Shown here in pieces: positions 42,489 to 42,667 of a stretch of 64,000 bases of DNA. A model generated the notes under the pieces. That model ran no database searches and was not told where the DNA came from. It saw only the letters and a list, made by a program, of their open reading frames with translations. Numbering within the stretch: the first letter of the stretch is position 1; every line of letters starts with the position of its first letter. Position numbers and translations under genes: made by a program. The stretch is from Pseudomonas aeruginosa PAO1. GTDB lineage: Bacteria; Pseudomonadota; Gammaproteobacteria; Pseudomonadales; Pseudomonadaceae. The stretch lies in assembly GCF_000006765.1 (NCBI RefSeq), contig NC_002516.2. The stretch is one strand, 5' to 3'.

Positions 42489-42638
42489 GAAAAACCCTAG
42501 AAGTCAGCGTTTAGGCGGGATCAACCGCCGGGGATTCGGAGAAGGGAGGCCAGCTCCCGCCACGGACAAATCCGTGGGCAAAGCAAACTCCTGCTGATTC
42601 CGGAGGGAATCGGCGGGAGCAGTACAAGACGGGAGCGT

Positions 42639-42667
42639 AGTCTACTGGAAACGGCTTACTAGCTCAA
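42639..42667 (-). promoter_or_regulatory. sigma70 promoter of pyrG-kdsA-eno
   Basis: TTGAGC-N17-TAGACT; -35 lies in the last codons of tilS. Confidence 0.75.

Follow-up and report, generated by a model that had tools for sequence, protein, structure and literature searches.

In Pseudomonas aeruginosa PAO1 the CTP synthase gene pyrG is transcribed, together with kdsA, from a sigma-70 promoter which gives rise to a 142-nt structured leader, the start being the G at position 42630 of the window (the whole 64,000-nucleotide stretch of DNA that was analysed), and it is expressed far above the upstream gene tilS. The start region is a candidate nucleotide-sensing module of the pyrC/pyrD kind, in which initiation would be decided between CTP and a purine followed by UTP; we regard this as plausible, with confidence that stops a little short of even. 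A wider reading of the same sequences is put forward more tentatively: an ancient module consisting of TAnnCT, five bases, (C)CC, a purine and U may control CTP synthase in most Gammaproteobacteria, in which RNA polymerase itself would act as the sensor, starts on C would be poorly productive, neither a repressor nor a riboswitch would take part, and the long leader of Pseudomonas would be a later addition serving attenuation and message stability.

The three genes tilS (42659-44002), pyrG (40860-42488, or 4070860-4072488 in PAO1 coordinates) and kdsA (40012-40857) all lie on the minus strand and were all confirmed with NCBIfam models. The pyrG product scored 865 bits against a cut-off of 308, the tilS reading frame exceeded the cut-offs of both the N-terminal and the C-terminal TilS models, and kdsA is the next gene in the same transcription unit as pyrG. 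A spacer of 170 nt separates tilS from pyrG and the pyrG promoter begins inside the last tilS codons, the tilS stop codon TAG (42659-42661, minus strand) falling within the promoter spacer. The region is 100% identical in the nearest genome compared (G001). Further upstream, between accA and tilS and directly 5' of the tilS start, a G+C-rich stem-loop, with a perfect stem of 12 bp and a loop of 4 nt, is found at 44005-44036 on the minus strand. The weak Rfam matches to this stem-loop (BSnc120, Chloroflexi-1) are spurious; it may be a terminator or attenuator of accA, a role in keeping with how little RNA covers tilS.

The elements that the initial annotation had assigned to the promoter, TTGAGC-N17-TAGACT followed by ACGC-UCCCG, are all present where it had placed them on the minus strand. 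The -35 hexamer TTGAGC (42662-42667) overlaps the last two tilS codons, and the -10 hexamer TAGACT (42639-42644) fits the class-wide consensus TAnnCT. An 8-nt discriminator follows, ACGCTCCC (42631-42638), with G or C at six of its eight positions; its CCC (42633-42631) occupies positions 6-8 after the -10 hexamer and is the candidate CTP-initiated start region. Position 9 is the G at 42630, and the initially transcribed bases UCUU at +2 to +5 (42626-42629) are conserved, the U at +2 as strongly as the CC.

The prediction that transcription starts on this G agrees with the start mapped in strain PA14. The dRNA-seq table of Wurtzel et al. (2012) lists the pyrG-kdsA unit as TU 900, with a transcription start at 1485380, the pyrG start at 1485522 and a 5'UTR of 142 nt, and the transcription-unit BED file of Konikkat et al. 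(2021) likewise gives 142 nt; as 142 nt upstream of 42488 is 42630, the PA14 start falls on the G at position 9 (G9). This is the only start recorded for P. aeruginosa in the published data. In four RNA libraries the contig covering pyrG had a mean depth of 36-377 (214-377 in three runs of one sample), approximately 30 times deeper than the tilS contigs, which were seen in run X22 only, at depths of 4.5-12. The 5' ends of three pyrG contigs lay at 42603-42611, just inside the mapped start. These contigs are consistent with a strong pyrG promoter, though contigs cannot prove a start. A consensus promoter scan of the region did not return the site, since its hexamers match at 8 of 12 positions only; the site is supported by the mapped start, by its invariance throughout the genus and by the enrichment of the same geometry across the class.

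Each of the 34 species of the GTDB genus carries one copy of the region. When 30 of these were aligned, it proved invariant from the -35 hexamer to approximately +20, exceeding the conservation of the neighbouring coding sequence. Across 58 loci from 21 genera of the family, TTGAG(C), a 17-bp spacer, TA..CT, five free bases, CCC, G and TCT were always found in this layout, with the start G replaced by A in one genus and by T in a single locus (L059); TTGAG(C) at 17 bp from the -10 hexamer, found in all 58 of these, was also present in most of the order-level loci. A strict motif, TAnnnT-N5-CCC-purine-T upstream of pyrG, was found in 27 of 28 family loci, 20 of 28 order loci (one genome per family) and 13 of 28 class loci, and a relaxed form with NCC in 26 of the 28 order loci, six of the order-level loci having CC instead of CCC. 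Shuffled upstream sets returned 0.22-0.28 strict matches per set and the reverse complement 0-1; across the class, the regions upstream of pyrG show this geometry some 50-100 times as often as shuffles. The class-level evidence does not include genome G308 (locus L137). Information content over 41 aligned loci was highest at C-2, C-1 and U+2, and +1 was always A or G. Outside Pseudomonas the first five bases of the discriminator vary freely and are often not G+C rich, and the C at position 2 after the -10 hexamer is not kept. Within the genome the motif occurs once, at pyrG, besides one chance match, and no other copy of the leader was found.

The layout with C at position 7 and G at position 9 is not special to Pseudomonas: the same module stands upstream of pyrG across the Gammaproteobacteria, including Escherichia coli. 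In E. coli K-12 the pyrG sequence reads TATACT GCTTT CCC G TCTT, with a leader of 47 nt and with mazG, not tilS, as the upstream gene; within the family of Pseudomonas the start module is constant although leaders can be as short as 73 nt or as long as 245 nt. The mazG-pyrG spacer of E. coli (L104, 2150-2420) has two copies of CGUCUU, one at the start and one some 25 nt further on, and it shares with the Pseudomonas leaders the sequence ACUUCU-N-AGGUU before the AUG, suggesting that the 3' part of the leader is also old. At the beginning of the coding sequence, the synonymous sites of pyrG codons 1-4 (ATG ACG CGC TAC; 42477-42488, minus strand) are identical in all family loci examined except L061, which ends in TTT, a possible sign that the RNA near the start codon is under constraint.

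From the geometry, its deep conservation and two published sets of 5'-end data, we infer that the start site is chosen according to the nucleotide pools. The preferred positions 7 and 8 are both C, so that initiation at them requires CTP for each of the first two nucleotides; initiation at position 9, a purine followed by U, requires GTP (or, in many other taxa, ATP) together with UTP. The choice would then follow roughly [CTP]^2 versus [purine NTP][UTP], a ratio that would set what CTP synthase makes against what it uses and what activates it. The substrates of CTP synthase are UTP and ATP, GTP activates the enzyme and CTP inhibits it; given this chemistry, conservation of the U at +2 would be understandable if that base contributed to sensing. 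RNAs started on the purine would be the productive mRNA, and those started on C would give less PyrG. Both kinds of start are on record within this promoter family, G9 in P. aeruginosa and the first C in E. coli; for the latter, a single 5'TNET-seq study (Nucleic Acids Research 2025, PMC12709180) reports a CCC initiation region with a start on the first C and 10.1% slippage.

The transcript itself is 142 nt long up to the pyrG start codon when counted from G9 and 145 nt when counted from the C at position 6 (C6), which bears out the earlier estimate of a leader of about 145 nt. The features that had been described within it are also present: GCUCCCG occurs twice (42636-42630 and 42620-42614), GGCGGGAGC lies at 42561-42553, three hairpins lie at 42611-42596, 42577-42560 and 42529-42514, and the ribosome-binding site is a weak AGGG (42498-42495, minus strand) placed 6 nt before the AUG and conserved in the family as (U)AGGG. 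A 159-nt stretch running from 42638 into pyrG folds better than shuffled sequences (z = -2.6). The first of the hairpins is the inner part of a longer structure, P1 (+12 to +43; 42588-42619, minus strand), which in P. aeruginosa has 14 pairs with two mismatches and a folding energy of -18.3 kcal/mol (z = -3.4); among 35 family sequences both sides of the stem have changed at 9 of the 14 pairs, a score reached by none of 500 shuffles. Directly after P1 is a U-rich tract, UUUGCUUU (42580-42587, minus strand), which is less U-rich in other species. Hairpin P2 (+54 to +71; 42560-42577, minus strand) shows compensatory change at four of seven pairs within the genus, and P3, formed by GGGAG and CUCCC (42544-42558, minus strand), at three of five, while P4, formed by GGCGG and CCGCC (42514-42529, minus strand) and preceded by the conserved CUUCGCUUCCCC, is invariant across the family. 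A small hairpin, P5 (42497-42507, minus strand), holds part of the ribosome site and is strong in other species of the genus and weak in P. aeruginosa. The stems thus hold up when compared across Pseudomonas leaders, by compensatory changes in P1-P3 and by invariance in P4. The loops and lengths of P2 and P3 vary freely, and the family as a whole keeps the linkers and the leader's 3' part. A search of the leader against Rfam 15, which had been suggested as a further check, returned no match even at E-values up to 10.

Premature 3' ends are found within this leader. In the PA14 data of Konikkat et al. (2021) a 3pMap peak at 1485420-1485423, set against a unit start of 1485372, places 3' ends at +49 to +51, where the U-rich tract UUUGCUUU ends, 6-8 nt after P1, the usual distance for intrinsic termination. 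Further leader 3' ends are mapped at +82, at +91 to +93 (4-6 nt after P3) and at +127 to +128, and over twelve samples the leader zone holds 18.8-53.6% of the 3' ends of the unit (36-54% in the first six); the same authors flagged the pyrG unit as a putative riboregulator. A consensus terminator scan found none in the leader, P1 being missed owing to the mismatches in its stem, and no conserved antiterminator or alternative pairing is visible in the alignments. P1 is a probable partial terminator, or else a decay barrier. The long leader of P. aeruginosa is therefore better described as four hairpins with a probable partial terminator than as the alternative-stem switch suggested by a single strain.

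Several smaller features of the leader were also recorded. Two single-stranded linkers (42580-42587 and 42533-42543, minus strand; alignment columns 47-56 and 105-121) contain a UUCGCU-like word, which in most species reads GUUCGCUAUUG after P1 and CCUUCGCUUCCCC before P4; two of the four PA14 leader 3'-end peaks lie in or at the edge of these linkers, which may represent a cleavage or protein-binding motif. A frame of 39 codons running from a UUG at +4 to a conserved UAA before the ribosome site (42511-42627, minus strand) is probably not a leader peptide, as the species differ by indels of 1-2 nt which break it. Two pairings proposed by RNAalifold, between the 5' GUC and the GAC of AUGAC and between the CCC before P4 and the GGG of the ribosome site, were not taken as evidence because their columns are all invariant and the helices are of 3 bp.

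The initial annotation had gone on to propose that these features form a switch: a start on C would add a CCCGUC arm which refolds the leader and lowers CTP synthase output. Spelled out, the arm would pair with GGCGGGAGC (42561-42553), and the downstream CUCCC, no longer bound, could then mask the ribosome site and reduce translation. The sequences needed are there, in that CCCGUC and GGCGGG can form six pairs, one of them G-U, and in a nascent RNA ending at 42553 a start at C6 pairs CCCG with CGGG at a probability of 0.34-0.42, compared with 0.00 for starts at C7, C8 and G9. However, partition-function folds of C6, C7, C8 and purine-9 transcripts from 84 leaders speak against it. In the full leader, forcing the CCCG pairing costs 8.3 kcal/mol over the optimum; the P. 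aeruginosa ribosome site is unpaired at 0.19 whether the RNA begins at C6, C7, C8 or G9, with the inner stem of P1 and P4 unchanged, and a GGG in pyrG codons 8-9 is the main pairing partner of the three added C. Over all 84 leaders the unpaired probability of the ribosome site differed between purine-9 and C6 starts by a mean of -0.004 (-0.06 to +0.05 in Pseudomonas), and C starts add no local 5' structure in the Pseudomonadaceae (-0.30 kcal/mol, compared with -0.59 in shuffles). As to the mutually exclusive stems, GGCGGGAGC and the second GCUCCCG copy on which they are built do exist, but only in P. aeruginosa: they are absent in the other 28 species aligned, the thirtieth row (L002) being 99% identical to the window, and elsewhere the same place reads differently and forms P3. 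Indeed GGCGGGAGC is the 5' arm of P3 plus two extra bases, and its conserved partner is the downstream CUCCC. As the other species of the genus lack GGCGGGAGC and the second GCUCCCG, refolding is not supported in this organism, and with the predicted accessibility of the ribosome site and of P1-P4 unchanged the claim that a C start refolds the leader and lowers CTP synthase output does not survive; we consider it very improbable.

Occlusion of the ribosome site in the manner of pyrC is thus rejected by folding for Pseudomonas and is possible in a minority of other taxa, a pyrC-like effect on accessibility being seen in only five distant taxa among the 84 leaders. Outside the Pseudomonadaceae, the energy of the 5' structure added by C starts ranks in the bottom 10% of the shuffled values for about 29% of taxa, some of which have clear CCC...GGG hairpins. 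Seven non-Pseudomonas pyrG upstream regions (L088, L122, L128, L111, L100, L103 and L101) have GGG(G) within 4-12 nt of the CCC, giving a 5' hairpin open to C-started RNAs only; in L088 the predicted partner, GAUGGG, is the ribosome site itself, which would make this a true pyrC-like design.

Under start-site choice by nucleotide pools, the lower output of C-started RNAs in Pseudomonas would most likely arise at initiation, through slippage or abortive cycling on the CCC as at codBA, upp and pyrBI. The loss is placed there because no structure specific to C starts is predicted in Pseudomonas, and an effect at initiation fits every leader length. The CCC at 42633-42631 provides the homopolymer of at least three residues at the start that reiterative-transcription control requires; the CC-only runs of the six order-level taxa are short for slippage and count against it. 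Downstream of the start, P1 and its U tract would act as a partial intrinsic terminator or decay barrier, and P2-P4 together with the two conserved single-stranded UUCGCU-like linkers would shape message stability and translation.

The strongest competing explanation is that pyrG has a growth-rate-regulated or stringent promoter resembling rrn P1, with a fixed purine start, in which the C-rich discriminator and the start at position nine make for a short-lived open complex and output follows the initiating purine NTP and ppGpp/DksA, not CTP. We give this a real but minority chance. The start at position 9 and the discriminator ACGCTCCC, with six of eight positions G or C, would be expected of such a promoter, and E. 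coli rrn promoters reportedly have an unusual +9 start. The rrn operon of the nearest genome (L105, 1160-1310) carries tandem promoters, TTGACA-16-TAGAAT-GCGCCTCCCG and TTGACG-17-TAGAAT-GCGCGGCCTCGG, and the first of these, TAGAAT GCGCCTCCCG, is very similar to that of pyrG. Like rrnB P1, the pyrG promoter starts nine bases after the -10 hexamer, and its C-rich discriminator likewise closes with CC ahead of a purine. Unlike rrnB P1, its conserved letters lie at -2 to +3 and do not adjoin the -10 hexamer, and its spacer is of 17 bp, not 16. Elsewhere the first five discriminator bases are variable whereas the CC, purine, U and C are kept, and the E. coli homologue is reported, in the one 5'TNET-seq study, to start on C, in which case the start is not fixed.

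Regulation could instead reside in the leader, downstream of a constitutive promoter, with P1 and its U tract as a regulated attenuator (dependent on a protein factor, Rho or RNase E, or a ligand-sensing RNA) and P2-P4 with the UUCGCU linkers as the sensor. The premature 3' ends, the share of 3' ends in the leader zone, the riboregulator flag, the covarying hairpins and the family-wide conservation of the linkers and 3' part all point in this direction. Nevertheless, there is no Rfam match, the loops and lengths of P2 and P3 are free and no antiterminator pairing is conserved; the start module stays in place whether the leader has 73-245 nt, as in the family, or 47 nt, as in E. coli, and the invariant CC-purine-U is left unexplained, and so we hold leader control of this kind to be unlikely. 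The conserved letters CCC-purine-TCTT might also be read as the operator of a DNA-binding regulator overlapping the start, as their strong conservation at +1 regardless of the upstream gene (tilS in Pseudomonas, mazG in E. coli) would allow. Such an operator would be of only about 8 bp, non-palindromic and without a second half-site, the motif occurs once in the genome, and the swap of A and G at +1 is tolerated as a start site would tolerate it; we know of no DNA-binding regulator of this sort for pyrG, and this explanation is highly improbable. Leader-only control, a DNA-binding regulator and refolding are all less likely than the rrn P1-like alternative, while both the rrn-like and the leader models are compatible with start-site choice and can coexist with it.

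CTP synthase is essential and a drug target. To our knowledge the control of pyrG expression in Gram-negative bacteria has so far had no explanation, only the Gram-positive mechanism of reiterative transcription having been worked out, and no proposal of start-site switching for a Gram-negative pyrG was found in the literature searched. Should start-site choice at pyrG prove true, the "repression without repressors" set would gain a third enteric-type gene, and one with an input logic, product squared versus substrate times activator, which has not been described before. The comparative result applies to E. coli, Pseudomonas and many other genera.

Among known systems, the pyrG genes of Bacillus subtilis and Lactococcus are controlled by CTP-sensitive reiterative transcription coupled to attenuation. 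The P. aeruginosa promoter shares with that of B. subtilis the gene, presumably the signal, a leader hairpin followed by U residues and the presence of premature 3' ends. It differs in that B. subtilis starts at GGGC and the added G pair with the pyrimidine arm of a terminator; a GGG start with poly-G extension is absent from P. aeruginosa, where the start reads G U C U U, and the P. aeruginosa leader has no conserved antiterminator pairing.

At codBA and upp, UTP-sensitive start-site switching is coupled to reiterative transcription, which also operates at pyrBI. The pyrG promoter resembles these in having a homopolymer run at one of two adjacent starts, so that the other start escapes slippage, and in the prospect of control without RNA structure, which is in keeping with leaders of such varied length; slippage on the CCC is, moreover, reported for E. 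coli pyrG in the 5'TNET-seq study. Unlike those promoters, the run at pyrG is of C rather than U, the slippage reported for E. coli is only 10.1% and of the productive kind, and some taxa have CC only.

The closest parallel remains enteric pyrC and pyrD. Read from the E. coli sequence, pyrC has TATCCT, 6 nt and CC GG, and pyrD has CATAAT, ACGCCCCC and GG, so that the match claimed earlier holds, with C at positions 7-8 and G at position 9 in both promoters; the exact starts at these two genes are said to be C7 and G9. The likeness to pyrD is particularly close, the E. coli pyrD discriminator, ACGCCCCCG, being nearly identical to the ACGCTCCCG of P. aeruginosa pyrG, and pyrG belongs to the same pathway as pyrC and pyrD with the same expected signal, CTP. 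At pyrC and pyrD transcription shifts to a C start when the GTP/CTP ratio is low, and the extended transcript then folds so as to cover its ribosome site (PMC7818426). That hairpin of the C-started RNA covers the ribosome site within a short leader, whereas the pyrG leader is of 142 nt and none is predicted in it, and it is only in pyrG that the U at +2 is conserved.
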